IMG/VR virus record: IMGVR_UViG_3300024239_000011
Coordinates: 372,001 to 436,000 of that record
Reading direction: 5' to 3' (one strand)
Length of the DNA stretch: 64,000 bases
Position numbers and translations under genes: made by a program. Positions within the stretch are counted from its first letter, which is position 1. Each line of letters begins with the position of its first letter. Shown in pieces: positions 7,616 through 17,481 of this stretch. A model generated the notes under the pieces. It was given only the letters and a program-made list of their open reading frames with translations, was not told the DNA's origin and made no database searches.

Positions 7616-8359
7616 TTATTGGTTCTTTTTGGATGGAAGGATGTAGTTGTAGACCGCCAAACCAGATTCGATGGCGATCTGAAGGGCACCTTTGTCGGTA
7701 ATGCTCATAGTGCAATCCGCACCATCACTCAGACGAAGAATCTGAAGTGTTTGAGAAATTGGGAATGCCAGCGGGGCACGCAACGTACCCAGAACACCCT
7801 TCTCAAAAACCATAGTACCCTTGTGGCTGGCAGCTTCGGGATCACCGAAGAAAATCACCAAATCACCGTCAACCGTATTGATCTGGAAATGGGTTTCCTG
7901 GCTGGAATACATACCCGCACGCTGGGCAAATTCCTTTATCATTGACTTTGTGGGTGCGATTTCCACGTTCCACGAAGCACCAAGGAACTTCGGCTGTTCC
8001 GGGATGACTTCTTTCGCCATCAGGCGATAATGATCTTTTGAACCCGCTTCGTCCTTGAAAATAATCTCTTCAGCAATGTTTTCACCACCACGATCACGAT
8101 ACTTCACCGAAACGGTAGCACCATCGGTCTTGTAATTCGGAAATTCAACCAATTGCTTGAGCAAGCCAAGATTAGTCAGACCGAAAACCCCTTTTAAATC
8201 CGCAAGCGGATCAATCAAGTGTCCCTTGATAATAACAGACTTATCAGAAGCCAAAGATTCGATTTCAGTTGCAGTATCACTACCAATGACCTTGACTATT
8301 TCGATGAAGCCAAGAGCGCCGCCAGTATGTTTCACGATGTCACGGAGTTCATTACGCAT
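7616..8359 (-). CDS. Probable DNA polymerase sliding clamp (gp45-like)
   Basis: 247 aa, beta-rich two-domain pattern, FGLTNL and terminal YNYILP; lies between the polymerase and RNase H. Confidence 0.6.
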   Translation of the reverse strand: MRNELRDIVKHTGGALGFIEIVKVIGSDTATEIESLASDKSVIIKGHLIDPLADLKGVFGLTNLGLLKQLVEFPNYKTDGATVSVKYRDRGGENIAEEIIFKDEAGSKDHYRLMAKEVIPEQPKFLGASWNVEIAPTKSMIKEFAQRAGMYSSQETHFQINTVDGDLVIFFGDPEAASHKGTMVFEKGVLGTLRAPLAFPISQTLQILRLSDGADCTMSITDKGALQIAIESGLAVYNYILPSKKNQ

Positions 8360-8485
8360 TTTCAGAGCCTTTATTATCCAGTTTGTTTGGTTCTAAGCGT
8401 TCAGCCTTTTGGCCGTCAATTTTTAAATCGTCGCTTCTTCGACATGCGCCGCCCGACGCGAGAAAATTGTGATTGATGGGTTCCA

Positions 8486-8860
8486 TCATTTCACGGCATC
8501 CCCGTATTTGATCTGAAGCTCTTCAAGAAGTTTCCGCTCCGCTTCTTCACTTGCGAGTTTCTTTTTGGCTTTACGCGCCAATGCTTTCATTTCACGATCT
8601 TTGCGTGCTTTTTCTTCTTTACGTTTCTCAGCAAGTATCCACTCTTTATACTGCTCTACGGTCTCACATATGAACTTATTCGGGTCTACGGGTGTCTCAA
8701 TAACAATAAAATCGTATTTGTGGCTCGCTTGTTTGAGTAGTTGAAAAGTTTCGTCATCAACTTCAGCAAAATCCGTGAACTTTGTTATGATCCATGGTTC
8801 ATAAGCATCATCATAACCATACCCAGCGGATTGCCCCAAAATTATTGCTACTTTATGCAT
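8486..8860 (-). CDS. Hypothetical protein with charged coiled-coil C-terminus
   Basis: ORF with SD GAGG upstream of MHKVA. Confidence 0.6.
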   Translation of the reverse strand: MHKVAIILGQSAGYGYDDAYEPWIITKFTDFAEVDDETFQLLKQASHKYDFIVIETPVDPNKFICETVEQYKEWILAEKRKEEKARKDREMKALARKAKKKLASEEAERKLLEELQIKYGDAVK

Positions 8861-8870
8861 GTGATGTGCC

Positions 8871-10565
8871 TCAAAATGAGAATAGGTCAGTATCAAGCTC
8901 GACCTTAGGTTTCTTTCTACTACCAGCAGACTTGGTTCCCGCAGCGATTACCGATTGTGCATTTTTCGCAACTACGAACATGTCTTCGAAAGTCGTATTG
9001 TTACTAATACGAGACAAATCCCACTGAAGAATGCCAATCAGATTGTCAATCTTCACGTCGATCATCGAGTTTTCCATTTTCTCGTGATCGAATGGCATCT
9101 TCTTAAACCAATCAGGTAGATTATGTTCCGGTACATCTACCGGGCGGGCAATACTTTCAATTCCGTAGGGATTACTTTTCAACTGACAAACCACCACCTT
9201 GTCACCATCCTTAATCGGCGGTGTGGCATGGTCAGTCATGATTTCAAGCATGTTGTTGAAGTTGATCGCGGCGCGAACGTGACCGGGCATGTTGACCTTA
9301 CCGGTCTTGATGTCGATTTCACAATCTTCGTCGTCTTCGAAATTGATATCATCAACCTCAAGTTCTTCCAGCTTGTTGCCGTACTTGGTTAACCCCTTGA
9401 TGGCGGTGGGACGACCTTTCTGCCAACCGGGACGCGCTTGGAACTTTTCACGGAAATCGCGGACGTAATCGATCACTTCGTCTTCCGGGATACCCTTCAG
9501 AACCTTGATCAGCACCTCTTCAAGGAAGTCCTGCACAAACGCCGGGGTGTCCGAACGCTTGGTTTCAAGACCCATCGCCTTCAGCTTGCCGGGCTTGCCG
9601 TCCACGTCATACCGCTTGCCTTCGTTGTCGATGACCAGCGCGGCATACCGCTTCTTCTTGATGTACATGGCGTTTTCCGCCACGATTTCACGACCAGCCG
9701 CAATGATCGCGCCGCGCTCAAGACCAGTATTGAACGTCCGATCCATGAACTCAGGGAAGGACTCGTTGGTCACATCTGCGATGTCGTCGTACAGCTTGAT
9801 GATGGCGTCCTTGTCGGTCCAATCGAAGGTCGGCGCCATGCCACCGAACTTACCACCGAACACCCCGGTACCGCCGTCCCCAAGCGTGGTGACGGTTTCC
9901 ACGATGGGCGGGAATGCCTTCTCAAGCTTCGCGGTGAATTCGTTTTCCCATGCTTCGATATCGGCATCTTCGCCGCATTCACGGATTTCATCTTCACTGA
10001 GCGCCATTTGAAGTACATCTGTCTGCTCAGCGGTCAACTCCTTGAGAACCGCAATGATCGCATTGTCATCGCCGGATTCAGTCGCCTTGTGGAACTTCCC
10101 AAAGATTTCACCAAGCTGTTCTTCGGACGAAATCACGTTGGTTTTCGGGGTCGCTTTAGTCCAAGCGTTGTAAACGCTGAAATACGCGGAGTCGGTATCA
10201 CCATAAATCATCGCCGGTCCCAAGTGATTGTAGTCACCCGTGACCAATTCGTTGATCTTGCCCATCATGTGACGCACGATACAGCGACCCGTCAGGGTAA
10301 CAGACTGCCCGATCCGAGGATCGAACCAACGCGACCCTTCGTTCAAGATGCAACCATACAACGAGTTAAGCTTAATCTTTGCAATCAATTGTTGCATATC
10401 CCAGTATTCGTACTGGTCCATGTAATACTGCTTATTTGCAGGGAGAATATGTCCATCTTTGAAGATCAGATCATACTCGATCATATAAGCCTTGAGGGCT
10501 TCAACATCACGCGCCGATACCAAACCCTTTAGATGGTCCAAGCTATATTCTTTTACTTCGGACAA
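8871..10565 (-). CDS. Family B DNA polymerase, C-terminal subunit (second fingers helix, palm, thumb)
   Basis: Motif B KIKLNSLYG, motif C YGDTDS, KKKRYA, KAMGLETKRSDTP; TTG start. Confidence 0.95.
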   Translation of the reverse strand: MSEVKEYSLDHLKGLVSARDVEALKAYMIEYDLIFKDGHILPANKQYYMDQYEYWDMQQLIAKIKLNSLYGCILNEGSRWFDPRIGQSVTLTGRCIVRHMMGKINELVTGDYNHLGPAMIYGDTDSAYFSVYNAWTKATPKTNVISSEEQLGEIFGKFHKATESGDDNAIIAVLKELTAEQTDVLQMALSEDEIRECGEDADIEAWENEFTAKLEKAFPPIVETVTTLGDGGTGVFGGKFGGMAPTFDWTDKDAIIKLYDDIADVTNESFPEFMDRTFNTGLERGAIIAAGREIVAENAMYIKKKRYAALVIDNEGKRYDVDGKPGKLKAMGLETKRSDTPAFVQDFLEEVLIKVLKGIPEDEVIDYVRDFREKFQARPGWQKGRPTAIKGLTKYGNKLEELEVDDINFEDDEDCEIDIKTGKVNMPGHVRAAINFNNMLEIMTDHATPPIKDGDKVVVCQLKSNPYGIESIARPVDVPEHNLPDWFKKMPFDHEKMENSMIDVKIDNLIGILQWDLSRISNNTTFEDMFVVAKNAQSVIAAGTKSAGSRKKPKVELDTDLFSF

Positions 10566-10620
10566 CTCTTTTTCCCTCAGACTAAATAACTACAGGATCA
10601 TTCCAAATGAGAGGTGTCAC

Positions 10621-11607
10621 GTGGAAACCACGGTAGCTTGTATGATTTGCGGAGAGAGGCATAAGCGAATCACTCGTACTCATCTCAAAAAGCATGATAT
10701 GACGACCGATCAGTACAAAGCAATTTTCCCGGATGCCCCTATTGTGAGCGAAGAACTCTCGTATAAACTTGGCGAATATGGTCGTAGTGACGACTGCCAT
10801 AATAGAAAAGAAGAATACCGCAAGATGGTCGGAGATAATCAGCGCGGACGAAAGCGTTCGGATATTACGCGCCAACGAATCTCTGAAGCACGAACTGGTG
10901 TATCTTGGGGATCGCATACCGAAGAACACAAAGAATACATGCGCGAAGTGATGCGCGAAGATGCGAAACGGCGCCTAGCAGAAGGCATTTGGCCGCCTGT
11001 CCAAACCCCAGAAGGGAGAAAACGGAACTCCGAACGCATGAAGCAAAAATGGGCAAACGGGGATTTCAACCATTTACAACAAGTAACTCGTACAAATTGG
11101 GAAAACGGAGTGTTTGCGAATGTTTGGACAGAAGAACTACGTGCCAAACAATCTGCGAACCGCGTCCGGTACCTTAAAGAGAACCCAACCAAGAAAACCG
11201 ATACCGGGCTTGAATTAAACTTCAAAGCGTTTCTCGAACAGCACGGGATCGCGTATGAGCATCAATACATCGTTGATGACACTCGGTCGGGGCAATGGCT
11301 GTTCGATTTCTACATCCCGTCCCTCAATCTACTGGTCGAAGTCGATGGGGAATACTACCACACAATCAGCCTGCGGCAGATCAACCGGGATAAGCGCAAG
11401 CAGAACTGTGCATGGAAACGTGGATACCATTTCTTGCGTATTTCCGACAAAGACTGGCGCCCCGAATTGGTATTCGAGACGCCAGATGCCTGGAAGGAAC
11501 ATAGCATTGCTTTAGTGGATCACCGCCGGAACGACCAGTTGATCGAAGTGCGCGTGGCTGCTGTACCATCCGATGCCGAGTTGGCAAGCGACTTATTCAG
11601 TTGGTGA
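10621..11607 (+). CDS. Free-standing homing-endonuclease-like protein: Ros/MucR-like zinc finger + NUMOD3 + DUF559/Vsr-like PD-(D/E)XK nuclease
   Basis: CMIC...HLKKH, HTEEHKE and RQRISEA NUMOD3 motifs, FDFYIP...VEVDGEYYH; GTG start after GAGGT; CTAAATA at 10582. Confidence 0.8.
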   Translation: METTVACMICGERHKRITRTHLKKHDMTTDQYKAIFPDAPIVSEELSYKLGEYGRSDDCHNRKEEYRKMVGDNQRGRKRSDITRQRISEARTGVSWGSHTEEHKEYMREVMREDAKRRLAEGIWPPVQTPEGRKRNSERMKQKWANGDFNHLQQVTRTNWENGVFANVWTEELRAKQSANRVRYLKENPTKKTDTGLELNFKAFLEQHGIAYEHQYIVDDTRSGQWLFDFYIPSLNLLVEVDGEYYHTISLRQINRDKRKQNCAWKRGYHFLRISDKDWRPELVFETPDAWKEHSIALVDHRRNDQLIEVRVAAVPSDAELASDLFSW

Positions 11608-11631
11608 CCAACCACAGTTTCTCGTCAACAT

Positions 11632-11787
11632 TTACTCGATCATGTCCAGTAAAGCCTCTGCGATTTCTGTGGCTTTACTAGCCGATACTTGATAGCAAAC
11701 ACCCTCAATCACGAGCATGGCACCTTCATCGGAGCCAACAACGACCGGGACCACTGTTTCAAAGAGTTCATCATCCCATGTGTTCAT
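11632..11787 (-). CDS. Small hypothetical protein (51 aa, below ORF-track cutoff)
   Basis: Manual translation MNTWDDELFETVVPVVVGSDEGAMLVIEGVCYQVSASKATEIAEALLDMIE. Confidence 0.5.
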   Translation of the reverse strand: MNTWDDELFETVVPVVVGSDEGAMLVIEGVCYQVSASKATEIAEALLDMIE

Positions 11788-11806
11788 AATTCGACCCGGA
11801 GCAACG

Positions 11807-11835
11807 ATGGCGTCATGATCAAATCATGACGCCAT
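11807..11835. repeat. 13-bp inverted repeat
   Basis: atggcgtcatgat-caa-atcatgacgccat, just past the pentapeptide gene stop. Confidence 0.65.
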
Positions 11836-11840
11836 TGCGT

Positions 11841-12122
11841 TTAGTAACGATCAGTACCAGTAGTTCCGGCACTATTTACGGTGTTCTGCGTCGGCTCCAT
11901 AAGCTTTGCAATGTTAACACCGTTTATCACCAGACCAGTTATATCGACATTTTCAAATACCGCATGGCTCAGATCAACATCGTTGAAATTTGCCCCGGCG
12001 AGTGAAACATCGATAAACTCTGCGTCTCGCATGTTAGCGTCTTGGAAGCGGGCACTAACAAAATTTGCCCCGCAAATAATTGCCCGGTTTGGTTGATCGC
12101 TATCAGTTGTACGCTTTGGCAT
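11841..12122 (-). CDS. Pentapeptide repeat protein
   Basis: ANFVS ARFQD ANMRD AEFID VSLAG ANFND VDLSH AVFEN VDITG. Confidence 0.85.
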   Translation of the reverse strand: MPKRTTDSDQPNRAIICGANFVSARFQDANMRDAEFIDVSLAGANFNDVDLSHAVFENVDITGLVINGVNIAKLMEPTQNTVNSAGTTGTDRY

Positions 12123-12640
12123 TACGCCCTCCATTCACTGTTGTGATTAACAAAAGAATAATTTCTGTACAAATAAAGTGCAAATATGTTGCAAGACGCG
12201 CCAAGGACATCACCACACATCCCGGCATATGAATTTTCTGAGAAATTGTAGTAGAACCAAAAAGGTGCTGATAGCAAATTGAACAGTCTCAGTGTTTGTG
12301 GGTTTGTACTAAAACTGGCGTAAGTATTGAGTATAGATGCAATCCCGACCATCACGTTAGGCACCGTTACCGCAGTGGCACCGATCATGATGACAGGCAA
12401 AATGTAGAATATCGATTTGACATATGCATTATTGGTATTCAACGCAACTATACCTCTTACCCCAGCAATCCCATCTATGATAGCTCCGGAATATGCGTCC
12501 AACAGAAAGTAATGGACTACGTAACATCCAATACCGATAGTCCCCGCCATAATGATATGGCGTGTTGTCTTCCAAAAGGTCGATGTGACGCCAACAATTA
12601 AACCAACAAAACCAATGAGTTGAGCTACCGTTTCGAACAT
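12122..12640 (-). CDS. YgjV-like multi-pass inner membrane protein
   Basis: AQLIG...HYFLLDAYSGA...R...LR...WFYYN pattern, hydrophobic. Confidence 0.7.
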   Translation of the reverse strand: MFETVAQLIGFVGLIVGVTSTFWKTTRHIIMAGTIGIGCYVVHYFLLDAYSGAIIDGIAGVRGIVALNTNNAYVKSIFYILPVIMIGATAVTVPNVMVGIASILNTYASFSTNPQTLRLFNLLSAPFWFYYNFSENSYAGMCGDVLGASCNIFALYLYRNYSFVNHNSEWRA

Positions 12641-13071
12641 GGCACACGTTCCCAATGGTTCCACGGGTCATCCCAACTTGCGATATTGAACCCGTACACG
12701 GTCGCCAAGTGTTCGGATTGTGCATGTCCAGGGCGGATCGAAACCGTAAGAATCTTATCTGCATACAGGGTTAGGCGATGTTGCCACAGCAAATGTGCAA
12801 GCCTTTTTCCACGATGTGAGGGAAGAATGATCCCACCAAGCAAATGGGTCGAAGGCATGTCATACGGATAACATCCATTGACAATAACGCTACACCAGCC
12901 GACAACGGTTTCTTCTTCTTTCAACCACCATGATTTGATTGGTCCATACTGACAGTTCGTAATTTCTGCTGTCGTATACCAATCACCATCATGCATATTC
13001 TCGGACGCCAGTTGCTCATAGTAAGGCAAATCACGTTCCGTAAGTTCATGAAAACTATACTTCATTGGCAT
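12625..13071 (-). CDS. GNAT-family acetyltransferase
   Basis: ILPSHRGKRLA acetyl-CoA motif A; terminal ATVYGF. Confidence 0.75.
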   Translation of the reverse strand: MPMKYSFHELTERDLPYYEQLASENMHDGDWYTTAEITNCQYGPIKSWWLKEEETVVGWCSVIVNGCYPYDMPSTHLLGGIILPSHRGKRLAHLLWQHRLTLYADKILTVSIRPGHAQSEHLATVYGFNIASWDDPWNHWERVPCSKR

Positions 13072-13597
13072 TTTCTATTGATGAATAGTGGTCAGAGACG
13101 ACCGTGAATTCTATAGTGGGTGTCATGCCATCTTTCGGACAAGCAGCCTGATACTCTTTGATCCAGCACCCGACGAAATTAGCCCAATCCATCGACCGAT
13201 CTTCCTCGGCAGACCCAATGATCATGTCAAATTTGCATGCGGAAAAAGAGGTGGTGCGCATGGCGTCGCGCATTCGGTCAACCTGTTCCATCGCCCACCG
13301 GCACCCATCCGACCCATACGAAAAACCAACCGTGATCGTGGTGGTGCGACGAACAGGTACGTCACAACTCAAGGTGTTGTATAACAGGGGGACCGTCTTG
13401 CTCTTAGGCGTTGGTTTAAAACTCAACCACGCCTTCAGTTTTTCCCAGATGGTGGGTTTGACTTCTCGTGAGGTCGGTAAGACAATGCTTTGTTGACGGG
13501 TTTCGCACTGAATGGACGGTCCCCCCGTACACCAGAACTGCTGATCGCCAATCTTGACGTAATTTTTGACCATGATTGGGTTGGGCAAATCCATCAT
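13055..13597 (-). CDS. Hypothetical protein with possible divergent tail-tube (gp19-like) C-terminus
   Basis: KFDMII...FVGCW...PTIEFTVVSD resembles recalled tail-tube C-termini. Confidence 0.4.
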   Translation of the reverse strand: MMDLPNPIMVKNYVKIGDQQFWCTGGPSIQCETRQQSIVLPTSREVKPTIWEKLKAWLSFKPTPKSKTVPLLYNTLSCDVPVRRTTTITVGFSYGSDGCRWAMEQVDRMRDAMRTTSFSACKFDMIIGSAEEDRSMDWANFVGCWIKEYQAACPKDGMTPTIEFTVVSDHYSSIENANEV

Positions 13598-13863
13598 CAG
13601 TCCTCACGCGGGTCCACGGGCGGACGTGGCATCGGCATCCAAACAGTCGGATTGTACTGGGTTCCACCCAGGTAATCGTTCAACGCATCATCAGATTCGA
13701 AAACGCCTTCCGGATCGAACGATACCCATTGATCACGGAACCATTGTCCGCAGCACGGCTCGTAGGCGACGTAGCTGCCGTCAGGGAGATACCCAGCAAC
13801 ACACAGAATGATACGAGTGCCGTCTTTTGGTGCTGTTGATATGTCTTGCCACATGAACATCAA
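13597..13863 (-). CDS. DUF551-like phage protein
   Basis: WQDISTAPKDGT...PTVWMPMP. Confidence 0.8.
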   Translation of the reverse strand: MMFMWQDISTAPKDGTRIILCVAGYLPDGSYVAYEPCCGQWFRDQWVSFDPEGVFESDDALNDYLGGTQYNPTVWMPMPRPPVDPRED

Positions 13864-14090
13864 TACTTTCCTACGATGGCTCGGATCGCCCCAAGATAAT
13901 CTGATGATCGAAGATTGCGCAACGCTTCACGCAATTTCTGATCGGCAGCCGCCCAACGTGCCGCAGATTCACGGCACAATTGTTCAAATGCCCGTTGCGA
14001 GTGAACTATTTCGTCAAACGACGGAACGAAAGGGTCTTTGGGTAGCAGCTTCATTTCATCACCTATCTGATGGGTCGTAAGCCCGTACAT
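13860..14090 (-). CDS. Hypothetical protein
   Basis: Coupled ORF in the small-gene run; start uncertain. Confidence 0.5.
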   Translation of the reverse strand: MYGLTTHQIGDEMKLLPKDPFVPSFDEIVHSQRAFEQLCRESAARWAAADQKLREALRNLRSSDYLGAIRAIVGKY

Positions 14091-14166
14091 CAGCAGTTTT
14101 CGCCCCAGGTATCTTCCCGAGGTTCGGCTTGATGCGCCAGTTCGCGCAGCGTTTCGAGCGGGATGG

Positions 14167-14514
14167 TCATGGGTTTCCTTTCTGTCTGGTTAATCGACGC
14201 TCATCACAATCTTTACGCCATTTCTGCAACCGTGCAGTCACAACCGGATCGAGACTTGCCAATAATTCCTCACCTTCGTTGCAATAATGGTAATAAAGCG
14301 GCTGCCATTCGTCATCGTCAGTTAATCCGTAATGTCGATTGAGCTTAATTTCGGCATCGCGACATTCAAGGTGATGGCGTAAAACATAAACGTCCCCGTC
14401 ATAAACGCCTCTGTATTCACTGTATGCTTGACCGAGTGTAATCATGGTTTGGCATCCCTGACACCGATGCTCTTTCCGAGCGGTGCGGGTTTGTTCCGTC
14501 AGACAAACCATCAC
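14167..14514 (-). CDS. Hypothetical phage protein with zinc-binding motif
   Basis: ARKEHRCQGC...HLEC; GTGA overlap with the upstream gene. Confidence 0.65.
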   Translation of the reverse strand: MMVCLTEQTRTARKEHRCQGCQTMITLGQAYSEYRGVYDGDVYVLRHHLECRDAEIKLNRHYGLTDDDEWQPLYYHYCNEGEELLASLDPVVTARLQKWRKDCDERRLTRQKGNP

Positions 14515-14732
14515 GTTTCCTCGCTCGCATACATGCGGTGGCTTTCTGCATGCCCTTTGATCCAATTTCGAAGTCGTTGGAGACGAACCACCGCCCGCAA
14601 ATATTCGTTTTTGTCAATCATGATGTGGTCTAGTCCTGGCTCAGATGGTTCATACGTCCCACCAACCAATGCCTGCATGACTTCATCAATCGACACTGCG
14701 AACCGGTCAAAATCATTTTCGTTTGAATACAT
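14511..14732 (-). CDS. Hypothetical protein
   Basis: ORF in a coupled run; start at MYSNE after GGGGG. Confidence 0.55.
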   Translation of the reverse strand: MYSNENDFDRFAVSIDEVMQALVGGTYEPSEPGLDHIMIDKNEYLRAVVRLQRLRNWIKGHAESHRMYASEET

Positions 14733-14736
14733 GACA

Positions 14737-15009
14737 TCATCCCCCATTCTCGGTAACACCACGTCGGGTGCCCGTACCTTGTTTGAATTCCTGCGACATA
14801 GCGAAGATCAAATCCGCCTTCCTCTTTTCTAGGAAGTCCATCACCTCGGCATGGGTCAGGCTTACGATAGGTGTGGAGAATTGGTCACCATCGCTATCGC
14901 GCCCGCTTGCCATCACAGTAAACCCGCTACGGGAATGCGATTTGGCCTTTCCAAGCGCGGCTTCCACATCGCTGAGTTTCTTCGCCAATTCCACTATAAT
15001 TTGGCTCAC
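14737..15009 (-). CDS. Hypothetical protein
   Basis: GTGA-coupled 90-aa ORF. Confidence 0.55.
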   Translation of the reverse strand: MSQIIVELAKKLSDVEAALGKAKSHSRSGFTVMASGRDSDGDQFSTPIVSLTHAEVMDFLEKRKADLIFAMSQEFKQGTGTRRGVTENGG

Positions 15010-15269
15010 CGTTTCGACTCCTTCTTGATCTTGAACCCTTTGAACACGGGCGGGATCACGGTGGGCGTGCTGCTGATACGGCCACCAGAGTAATGGTCGC
15101 CGCTGTTGTCCAGGCGACCACCTTCAATGATTACTTCAAGGTCATCTGCCACAACGTGGATGTTGTGTTCTTCCATGAGATAATCCGCAACGATCTCGCG
15201 GATGTCCTTCTCGTTGATAGTCACCGTGAGGACTTCGGTGATACTGATACCGGATACTTTCTTGTCCAT
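15006..15269 (-). CDS. Hypothetical protein
   Basis: 87-aa ORF with GC3-rich codons. Confidence 0.6.
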   Translation of the reverse strand: MDKKVSGISITEVLTVTINEKDIREIVADYLMEEHNIHVVADDLEVIIEGGRLDNSGDHYSGGRISSTPTVIPPVFKGFKIKKESKR

Positions 15270-15322
15270 TGACGCTCACCATCTTGAGTAGTATGGTATG
15301 ACTGTTACAGGGAGTACCGACG

Positions 15323-15490
15323 ATGCATACGATCCAACGCATTACCGATATGCTTCAACAAGAGCATGACGGCTACACAATCAACTATTCGGTTCTGCAT
15401 GATCTGGCATCACACGCATTGCCCGAGAACCCCGATCTCAAACACACCCTGGTCAGCGTGATCAATCGCTGTAGGCGTATTTTGAAGTAG
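15323..15490 (+). CDS. Small hypothetical protein (55 aa) with its own sigma70-like promoter
   Basis: MHTIQRITDMLQQEHDGYTINYSVLHDLASHALPENPDLKHTLVSVINRCRRILK; SD GGGAG; TTGACG-N17-TATGGT at 15269-15297. Confidence 0.6.
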   Translation: MHTIQRITDMLQQEHDGYTINYSVLHDLASHALPENPDLKHTLVSVINRCRRILK

Positions 15491-15625
15491 CCGGGCTTCC
15501 ACCGGTCCCCGACACTTAATCACTGGCATACTTCATCAGCCAGCCCCGCTGTCGTCACGTCCGTACCCGGTCCCCGTCTACGTGGTCGGCGTTGGTACGG
15601 AACAGTCTGTCCACCTCGGTGTGCG

Positions 15626-16309
15626 TTAGTAGTCGTAGCGGTTGGGGTGCGTTTCTTCGAGATATTCGGTATCCACAATGACACGGGTTTTTGCAGCGTG
15701 CATGAAGAACATGTCACGCTCGAACCCATAGAGGTTGCCCATGAACAGGTCTTTCTTCACGTCAGTACCACGAAGCGTCACCGAGAACAATTTACCATCC
15801 TCACCAATACCAAGCTGAATAGCGCAGCTATACTTGGTAGTGTTGGAATCCTTGTCTAAGTAGAGCCAATACGATCTGTATTGGCTTTTTTCAAGTATGG
15901 CAGTGACGGCATCGTCGCAAGCTTCGTTGTCGCTGCGAACCCATTCCTTGAACTTCTCGACCAACTCGGACAACTTAATCACCTCCGGGGCGCTAGTCCC
16001 CAATAGGTTCTCAAGGTCTTTCTCAAGTTGCTGGGCACCCATCGTTTCGATCAAGGCACCCAGTTTTCGTTGGACAATACCGAGAACGATATTATTGTAA
16101 CCGGGCAACCCAAGCTGACTTAAATCGACCTTAAGCGTTTCCTGAATCGCTTTTTCAAGATTTCGACCGAACTCAGAGTATGAGCGCAAAGCGTTTTCAA
16201 CAATGTCCTCGACCGTTTTTTCGATCTTGGTTTGTATCATTGTTTCAAGTTTACCGCTTTCTGATAGATGGCGTATTGATTGCAACACCACGTCTTCGAA
16301 CTGTTTCAT
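15626..16309 (-). CDS. Conserved phage hypothetical protein
   Basis: ALRSYSEFG...LGLPGYN...IKLSELV pattern; ATGA-coupled start MKQFE. Confidence 0.7.
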   Translation of the reverse strand: MKQFEDVVLQSIRHLSESGKLETMIQTKIEKTVEDIVENALRSYSEFGRNLEKAIQETLKVDLSQLGLPGYNNIVLGIVQRKLGALIETMGAQQLEKDLENLLGTSAPEVIKLSELVEKFKEWVRSDNEACDDAVTAILEKSQYRSYWLYLDKDSNTTKYSCAIQLGIGEDGKLFSVTLRGTDVKKDLFMGNLYGFERDMFFMHAAKTRVIVDTEYLEETHPNRYDY

Positions 16310-16608
16310 TTGTTTTTCTCGTAGTAATGGTCGTGAAGCTGACAATTGTTGATGACCATGCCTTCTTCGAACCAGTTGTTTCCGTTTTCTTGATTGTAAG
16401 CCTTATCTTCCGGGTGTGGTGATAGGCAGATATCCAAGGCAGGCAAAGGAAGAGTATTGCCATCAACGATGTTCAGAATAGAAAACGCTACGCCATCGCA
16501 CCGCTCCTTGGGCGATTTGTCGGGCAAATTTGCCCAGAAATCAGCAATCCCCCGGATGTGGCGAAGGAATATGTCCCGGACTTCTTCAGCCGTATATGCA
16601 CGCGACAT
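16306..16608 (-). CDS. Conserved phage hypothetical protein
   Basis: RAYTAEEVR...ERCDGVAFSILNIVDG...LP...PHPEDK. Confidence 0.7.
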   Translation of the reverse strand: MSRAYTAEEVRDIFLRHIRGIADFWANLPDKSPKERCDGVAFSILNIVDGNTLPLPALDICLSPHPEDKAYNQENGNNWFEEGMVINNCQLHDHYYEKNK

Positions 16609-16609
16609 A

Positions 16610-16996
16610 TCAGTGATCCTTTATGTGCGTGTCATACGCGCTTTGATCCATAAGACGGTCCAACTCTTCCGGTGCCGTGATCCGCAGCTTGACGAACCAT
16701 CCTGCATCCATTGGCGAGATGTTGATCAATGAGGTGTCTGTGATCAGCGCATTATTGACCTCAACTACCTCACCGGAAAGCGGTGCAAACACATCACTGG
16801 CAGCTTTAACCGACTCGACTACGGCTAAATCCATCCCTCTAGAAACAGTTTTCCCGACCTCTGGGAGGTCAACAAACACAATGTCACCGAGTGCATGTTG
16901 CGCATAATTAGTGATGCCCACGGTGGCAATGTCGCCCTCCACGGAAACCCATTCATGTTCGGAGGTGAACTTGATCATTTCGTTTGAAAATCCCAC
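16610..16996 (-). CDS. gcvH: Glycine cleavage system H protein (lipoyl carrier)
   Basis: HEW, VGITNYAQ..LGDIVFV, VESVKAASD with the lipoyl-Lys, N.SP...GW. Confidence 0.95.
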   Translation of the reverse strand: MGFSNEMIKFTSEHEWVSVEGDIATVGITNYAQHALGDIVFVDLPEVGKTVSRGMDLAVVESVKAASDVFAPLSGEVVEVNNALITDTSLINISPMDAGWFVKLRITAPEELDRLMDQSAYDTHIKDH

Positions 16997-17080
16997 ATGA
17001 TTCGATTACTAGGTATTCTATTGGTCATGCAGAGACATCCGCAATTTTTATATGCTGCTGATAAAAAGGACAGTATTCTA

Positions 17081-17428
17081 ATGGCTTTTGAGTACCGGAT
17101 CGTATCGGAGCAAGAATTCCGAACCAAACTGATAGAAGCACTGAAGAATTGCCCGGCTAAATCGGTCACTGGACCGGGCAGAAGCGGTGCAATTGCTGCT
17201 GCCTATACCAGCCACCTTTTGGACATACCGTTTGTCCCTTATGGTCGAAAAGTTGGACCCGACCTCCAACCGCTCTTAATTGTGGATACCGCGCTGTATT
17301 CTGGTTCCACCATGCGGAAAGCCGAGAAGCAATATCAGGGCGCCCATTTAATCAAGCGGTGGCTGTATGCAGAACCGCCGATGGTGCGGTTCTGGTACGA
17401 ATTCCCATTCGATACGGCATCCGCATAA
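17081..17428 (+). CDS. Minimal type I phosphoribosyltransferase-like protein
   Basis: GPGRSG pyrophosphate loop; LLIVDTALYSGSTM PRPP-binding loop. Confidence 0.65.
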   Translation: MAFEYRIVSEQEFRTKLIEALKNCPAKSVTGPGRSGAIAAAYTSHLLDIPFVPYGRKVGPDLQPLLIVDTALYSGSTMRKAEKQYQGAHLIKRWLYAEPPMVRFWYEFPFDTASA

Positions 17429-17481
17429 GGAAAGGGCGCCCTTCTCATCGGTAGTCACTAGGACACATTGCATCGATCAAT

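Follow-up and report, generated by a model that had tools for sequence, protein, structure and literature searches.

A homing endonuclease in the split DNA polymerase gene of a 543-kb phage ends in the peptide with which the polymerase is expected to hold the sliding clamp

The free-standing homing endonuclease that sits in the split family-B DNA polymerase (PolB) gene of a 543-kb phage ends in the same short C-terminal peptide as the polymerase itself, ELASDLFSW against ELDTDLFSF, and comparative evidence suggests that this peptide is a functional and exchangeable address label for the phage sliding clamp, although its binding to the clamp is inferred. The DNA analysed (hereafter the window) is a stretch of 64,000 nucleotides, bases 372001-436000 of a single 543,035-bp virus contig with 48.7% G+C coming from subsurface and soil metagenomes. 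The resemblance was first pointed out by a sequence-only reading, which noted that the codons differ and placed the match at protein level, and this observation is confirmed. The C-terminal polymerase subunit (polC) ends KVELDTDLFSF and the divergent endonuclease ends DAELASDLFSW, each followed by TGA; the last nine residues are encoded by GAG CTT GAT ACT GAC CTA TTC TCA TTT in the former and GAG TTG GCA AGC GAC TTA TTC AGT TGG in the latter, and the two 30-nt ends share only 18 of 30 bases, with Ser and Leu encoded by different codon families. A recent DNA copy of the polymerase 3′ end was thus considered and rejected. Only the start of the endonuclease needs correction: TTG 10492 was considered and rejected because it overlaps polC, whilst GTG 10621 has an RBS-like GAGAGGTG, is needed to keep the first Cys of the CxxC zinc finger and is the start used in public gene calls (328 aa). 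The coordinates are collected in the table.

Table. Features of the polymerase split site and its surroundings (window coordinates).
Position	Strand	Feature	Support
10621..11607	+	Free-standing homing endonuclease gene (328 aa): Ros/MucR-type C2H2 zinc finger, helical NUMOD-like repeats, EDxHD/Vsr-like nuclease, linker and tail	
10621..10761	+	N-terminal Ros/MucR-like zinc finger (CxxC...HxxxH), presumed DNA-binding module	Pfam PF05443 E=1.5e-6; C/H columns conserved in two alignments
11203..11520	+	EDxHD/Vsr-like catalytic domain (residues about 195-300)	AF2 pLDDT 88-98; similarity to PDB 3r3p; invariant residues (see text)
11521..11577	+	Linker (residues 301-319, RRNDQLIEVRVAAVPSDA), absent from type-B homologues and shared base for base with the alternative type-A allele	Alignments and variant contigs
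11578..11607	+	Tail ELASDLFSW plus stop, the polymerase-type clamp-interaction motif	Scoring matrix (see text); pLDDT below 50 for residues 320-328
8871..10565	-	PolB C-terminal subunit, polC (564 aa); last 9 codons (8874-8900) give ELDTDLFSF	Pfam PF00136
17482..19113	-	PolB N-terminal subunit (543 aa, exonuclease half), 5.9 kb beyond the endonuclease	phrog_262 / phrog_2062 DNA polymerase, E=3e-120
7616..8359	-	Sliding clamp (247 aa, PCNA fold), presumed receptor of the tails	ESM Atlas TM 0.75-0.78 to archaeal PCNA; AF2 pLDDT 96; Foldseek PCNA E about 1e-12, TM 0.66-0.73; no Pfam hit
10533..11520		Swappable cassette, replaced in a strain 99.2% identical over the flanking 7.25 kb by about 1027 unrelated bases encoding a type-A endonuclease body	Joint 10427 to 11524; two variant contigs
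10329..10532		Hypervariable tract in the 5′ end of polC next to the cassette, 33 differences in 200 nt against 23 in the preceding 7 kb, 12 amino-acid changes in the first 43 residues of polC; looks like co-conversion	Variant contigs and a polC variant

The polymerase tail is itself a conserved motif of the RB69/T4 gp43 and PIP kind, since 119 PolB homologues end almost without exception in [N/D/S]-L-F-x-[F/W] followed by 0-2 residues, and nine of 59 non-redundant tails end in W. When a position-specific scoring matrix built from these 59 tails (the phage's own polymerase excluded) was run over the C-termini of 789 crude genes of the genome, the endonuclease ranked first at 13.0 bits and the own polymerase second at 12.6 bits, whereas only about 0.08-0.23 tails of 10 bits or more are expected by chance. 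Similarly, the plain pattern LF.[FW] at the extreme C-terminus occurs in 4 of the 789 genes, against 0.19 expected from its internal frequency, and in 0 of 2474 decoy ORFs.

The best solved relative of the endonuclease is I-Bth0305I (PDB 3r3p, phmmer E=0.0011 over residues 198-278), the prototype of the EDxHD (Vsr-like) homing endonucleases (PMC3239194). Residues E198, D229, D242, H247 and D257 are invariant in 19 homologues and map onto E170, D196, N208, H213 and D222 of I-Bth0305I. The protein thus has the composite catalytic residues of this family and a separate N-terminal module presumed to read the DNA sequence, although the type of module differs from that of I-Bth0305I. Only weak, below cut-off Pfam hits to models related to the Vsr mismatch-repair endonucleases (PF18741, PF04480) were found; the latter are stand-alone enzymes of roughly 150 aa with intercalating Trp residues and a zinc site for T:G mismatch recognition, whereas architecture and context are here those of a homing endonuclease. 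Neither is the protein a Ros/MucR transcriptional regulator, a small (about 140 aa) protein consisting of that domain, since only profile positions 61-110 of 123 match at the N-terminus of a 328-aa nuclease. The finger is a borrowed DNA-binding module.

Homologues occupy the same place in other phages, between or beside the two polymerase halves, e.g., in the 545-kb contig L004, in the contigs L006, L007 and L009, in the contig of P0012 and in IMG/VR loci L010-L024. This is a family of free-standing homing endonucleases of the PolB split site, comparable to the seg and mob genes in split T4-type genes (PMC2988022). A megablast search of 8000-12000 against phages found no match, and tblastn of the endonuclease against phages found only distant partial hits; likewise, searches for related loci found none in IMG/VR with polC alone and none with the type-A alignment, and a metagenome scan with the clamp alignment returned only the source contig and two distant loci without a tailed endonuclease. 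One homologue of the endonuclease (P0011, 526 aa) is fused to an N6/N4 DNA methyltransferase domain (PF01555). In L004 and L006 the endonuclease alone fills the split, whilst in the window it is separated from the polymerase N-subunit by about 5.9 kb (11608-17481) with some 14 small minus-strand ORFs, including a pentapeptide-repeat-like protein, a membrane protein and a phrog_2600 protein. In L004 (10880-10900) the 3′ ends of the endonuclease and of the polymerase N-subunit overlap by 21 bp on opposite strands and both proteins end L-S-K-x-L-G, which implies a palindromic stretch at the junction. Polymerase C-halves of relatives also carry intein or intein-remnant segments (PF14890; L007:2315-3547, L009:3824-6007 and, in the contig L005, 4022-5032), and in L007 polC is broken into further pieces. 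The PolB gene is a hot spot for several kinds of mobile elements in this lineage.

The tail is an appendage. Homologues of the window's own type (type B, 30-58% identical) end 4-12 residues after the invariant R302, whilst the window's protein continues for 26 residues, and the AF2 model, confident for the nuclease domain, drops to pLDDT 54 and 43 in the last two blocks, as expected for a short linear motif on a flexible linker. About 19 type-B homologues have no polymerase-like tail, although their polymerases do, and about 8 further split-site homologues in IMG/VR lack it as well. The tail is therefore dispensable for the family.

Whether homologous endonucleases carry tails matching their own polymerase had been proposed beforehand as a test, and the answer is positive in the nearest relative phage and negative elsewhere. 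This relative (L007) shares the synteny of endonuclease, polC, clamp, virion protein and 5′-3′ exonuclease, and its clamp and polC are 64% and 57% identical to those of the window. Its endonuclease at the same site is of another subtype (type A) and only 25% identical, yet it ends DELPSDLFVWD and matches the window's tail at 7 of the 9 motif positions, whilst its polymerase ends SLDGDLFVF. The free position of the motif is therefore V in both proteins there and S in both proteins here, where V occurs in 7% and S in 31% of polymerase tails. This covariation rests on one position in two genomes (chance about 0.02 by polymerase-tail frequencies), but the tail DNA is only 15 of 27 identical, with synonymous differences throughout, which points to selection on the peptide. 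A third relative, L009, has a tandem in-frame fusion of a type-A and a type-B body and no tail.

Further evidence comes from the population in the source samples, for which contigs of four runs of the source study were aligned to 8700-11800. In one run (X3) a second allele joins 10427 to 11524 with 1135 other letters in place of the window's 1096, at a depth of 56 against 32 for the window allele, and a second run (X4) has the corresponding loose end; no empty-site allele was seen in the runs aligned. A polC variant from the 90% cluster, differing at 12 of its first 43 residues, led to two contigs (L085 and L086). L085 is 99.2% identical to the window over 7.25 kb, after which 33 differences cluster at 10329-10525, followed by a non-homologous stretch encoding a type-A endonuclease 57% identical to that of L007 and 32% to that of the window. 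Identity resumes from 11521 (i.e., codon 301), and the type-A frame reads on as RRNDQLIEVRVAAVPSDA up to the contig end at 11578, whilst in X3 both alleles converge on one downstream contig covering 11524-11800. Two unrelated nuclease bodies are therefore fused in frame to the same linker and tail, and the locus shows the co-conversion-like gradient typical of homing. Since tails accompany type A in two of three cases and type B only here, the window's protein is best read as a type-B body (residues 1-300) that replaced a type-A body and kept its linker and tail. However, the identical tail on the two alleles of one population could simply mark where recombination happened to end.

The motif is used more widely. 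In the same genome an N6/N4 DNA methyltransferase (genome 514288-515280, PF01555 E=2.6e-41) ends GGNDLFEW and a small DNA methyltransferase (474235-474786, phrog_799 E=8e-31) ends NSALFQF; their homologues lack these ends, apart from a 98%-identical copy, which suggests replication-coupled methylation through the clamp. A HaeIII-like restriction endonuclease (250478-251443, PF09556) ends INKDLFG, resembling the LFG ending of the T4 gp43 type, and lies next to a D12-class (Dam-like) methyltransferase in what looks like a phage-borne R-M-like pair (249515-251443). Its tail is kept only as a possible variant (one such tail against 0.085 expected). Three further methyltransferases and three paralogous endonucleases of the genome have no tail, so the label is selective, not general. 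In the cultured 469-kb relative Sinorhizobium phage Phosso (PV764938.1; clamp 39% identical) the unsplit polymerase ends NDLFTF, and a glycosyltransferase (223052-223924) and a 135-aa protein inside a preQ0/7-deazaguanine gene cluster (153487-153894) both end DLFDFG, making them candidate clamp-tethered DNA-modification factors in a tractable system. Moreover, 455-aa proteins with weak GT4/GT1 glycosyltransferase similarity in the contigs L020 (961-2328) and L023 (2013-3383) end TLFSFE and TLFAFE, like the polymerases of the same contigs (TLFEF).

The presumed receptor of these tails is the neighbour of polC, which folds in prediction into a PCNA-type clamp subunit. A single complex prediction of the clamp trimer with the polymerase, methyltransferase and endonuclease tails scored 0.16, under the mark of 0.32, a value which is by the method's own statement no evidence either way and may have been hurt by the six-chain design.

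In our interpretation, to which we give a probability of about 0.65, the roughly 28-residue flexible extension most likely tethers the endonuclease to clamps loaded on replicating or recombining phage DNA. Target search and cleavage of a cassette-less or rival polymerase allele in a co-infecting genome would then be coupled to the replication and recombination machinery that repairs the break and copies the cassette. The identity of the motif, its statistical rarity, its conservation with synonymous change and covariation in a relative, its retention across a body swap, the nuclease family and the clamp fold are established by the analysis, whilst physical binding to the clamp, site-specific cleavage and any effect on homing are inferences. 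The sequence-only reading had proposed either a mobile endonuclease that rides the clamp or a domesticated replication nuclease, and this interpretation is partly supported: the mobile alternative is favoured, but riding the clamp remains an inference.

The domesticated alternative, in which the Vsr-like enzyme is no longer selfish and works at the fork as a clamp-bound nuclease (analogous to NucS/EndoMS-PCNA, FEN1 or MutL-beta), e.g., on mismatches, nicks or stalled forks, is unlikely but survives best among the rivals. In its favour, the catalytic fold is that of the Vsr mismatch-repair endonuclease (PMC3239194), and the gene lies in a replication module with clamp, 5′-3′ exonuclease and polymerase. 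C-terminal clamp motifs are typical of replication and repair nucleases. On the other hand, the family is tied to the PolB split site across many phages and is patchy, two unrelated bodies alternate at the locus within one 99%-identical population next to a co-conversion-like tract, sequence-specific DNA-binding modules are present (the Ros/MucR finger, and NUMOD3 in type A), and most homologues have no tail. Slightly less likely, the tail could be a hitch-hiking relic of an earlier resident gene or allele, without function in the endonuclease and kept only because recombination boundaries fall upstream of it. A recombination boundary alone would give the base for base identity of the two alleles from codon 301, and most family members work without a tail; however, in L007 the tail is kept whilst nearly every codon differs and the body has diverged to 25% identity, both fusions are in frame and end exactly at the motif, and three protein families in one genome independently carry it. 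It is also improbable that the tail acts as a competitor or regulator that competes with the polymerase for the clamp pocket, displacing or pausing the replicase near the target or titrating the clamp, rather than helping target search. The tail belongs to the motif class of the polymerase tail and scores as high, and clamp pockets are known sites of partner competition (PMC9690074), but nothing distinguishes this from simple tethering, a trimeric clamp can hold several partners, and methyltransferases with the same tail argue for recruitment rather than inhibition. Chance, although the motif is short with five informative residues, is very unlikely given a genome-wide expectation of 0.03-0.2, the top rank of this tail and its recurrence in L007, with a matching free residue, and on two methyltransferases.

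C-terminal clamp-binding peptides are known from T4/RB69 gp43, gp33 and gp55 (PMC9690074) and from the PIP boxes of PCNA partners, which likewise place a short hydrophobic or aromatic motif at the extreme C-terminus on a flexible tail. Here the client is a homing endonuclease instead of a replicase or transcription factor, the consensus is that of the phage's own polymerase, and the clamp, of the trimer-type PCNA/gp45 fold, resembles PCNA more than gp45. I-Bth0305I and Hef of T4-related phages (PMC3239194) share the catalytic domain, the N-terminal modular DNA-binding region and the phage-borne association with a replication or recombination gene, whereas the present gene is free-standing in a split gene rather than intron-encoded, has a Ros/MucR-type zinc finger instead of NUMOD/HTH alone and carries a clamp-type tail not described for the family in the papers searched. 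In Aeromonas phages 25, 44RR and Aeh1 (PMC2988022) gene 43 is also split into two cistrons with a free-standing seg or mob endonuclease at the split; the endonuclease family differs, the gene is here on the opposite strand with 5.9 kb of extra genes before the polymerase N-subunit, and no clamp motif is reported for seg or mob enzymes. Selfish elements that use the processivity clamp to find replicating DNA include Tn7, through TnsE. Others are Tn3 TnpA (PMC11417375) and the RmInt1 group II intron protein (PMC6698660). These use the host beta clamp for transposition or retrohoming, whilst a DNA homing endonuclease would here use the phage's own PCNA-like clamp. The two methyltransferases, and the glycosyltransferases of relatives, are paralleled by T4 alpha-glucosyltransferase, which binds gp45 (Sommer 2004, via PMC13216743, where no C-terminal motif of this kind is described), and by DNMT1 with PCNA (PMC9690074); phage methyltransferases with such tails were not found in the literature searched. 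Nucleases with a terminal clamp-binding motif include ZRANB3 (HNH with PIP/APIM, PMC5481773). Archaeal NucS/EndoMS is another, and both are host genome-maintenance enzymes, not mobile elements. A homing endonuclease with a clamp motif was not found in our literature searches, so what seems new is the class of client, with unusually direct evolutionary evidence that the linker-motif unit is modular, and not the motif.

Homing endonucleases are thought to be coordinated with phage replication and repair only through timing of expression (PMC2988022). A physical tether to the clamp would give a direct mechanism, i.e., one-dimensional target search on clamp-loaded DNA, with cleavage restricted to replicating genomes where a repair template and the recombination-dependent replication machinery are at hand. 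It would also widen the known clientele of phage clamps beyond the replicase, late transcription factors and T4 alpha-glucosyltransferase to DNA methyltransferases and mobile nucleases. The survival of a linker-plus-motif unit across cassette replacement is a natural experiment on how short linear motifs are acquired. More tentatively, and with less than even odds, it is hard to exclude that in this lineage of jumbo phages the polymerase-type tail is a portable address label, captured by unrelated DNA enzymes (methyltransferases, glycosyltransferases, perhaps a restriction-like nuclease) and by selfish homing endonucleases, whose competing cassettes swap bodies while keeping the label. If so, homing would be physically coupled to the replisome, in what would be the first case of clamp-guided DNA homing, and would show a phage clamp tool-belt comparable to that of PCNA.

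Only 55 bp (10566-10620) separate the divergent starts of polC and the endonuclease, and transcription of polC must therefore run antisense through the endonuclease gene, which could regulate it by antisense; a promoter (sigma-70-type) and terminator scan of 10300-11900 found nothing above the shuffles. Elsewhere in the genome (359665-360504), a 279-aa ORF ends in ANQSAQGVLRLFG, which recalls the conserved C-terminus of flagellins.
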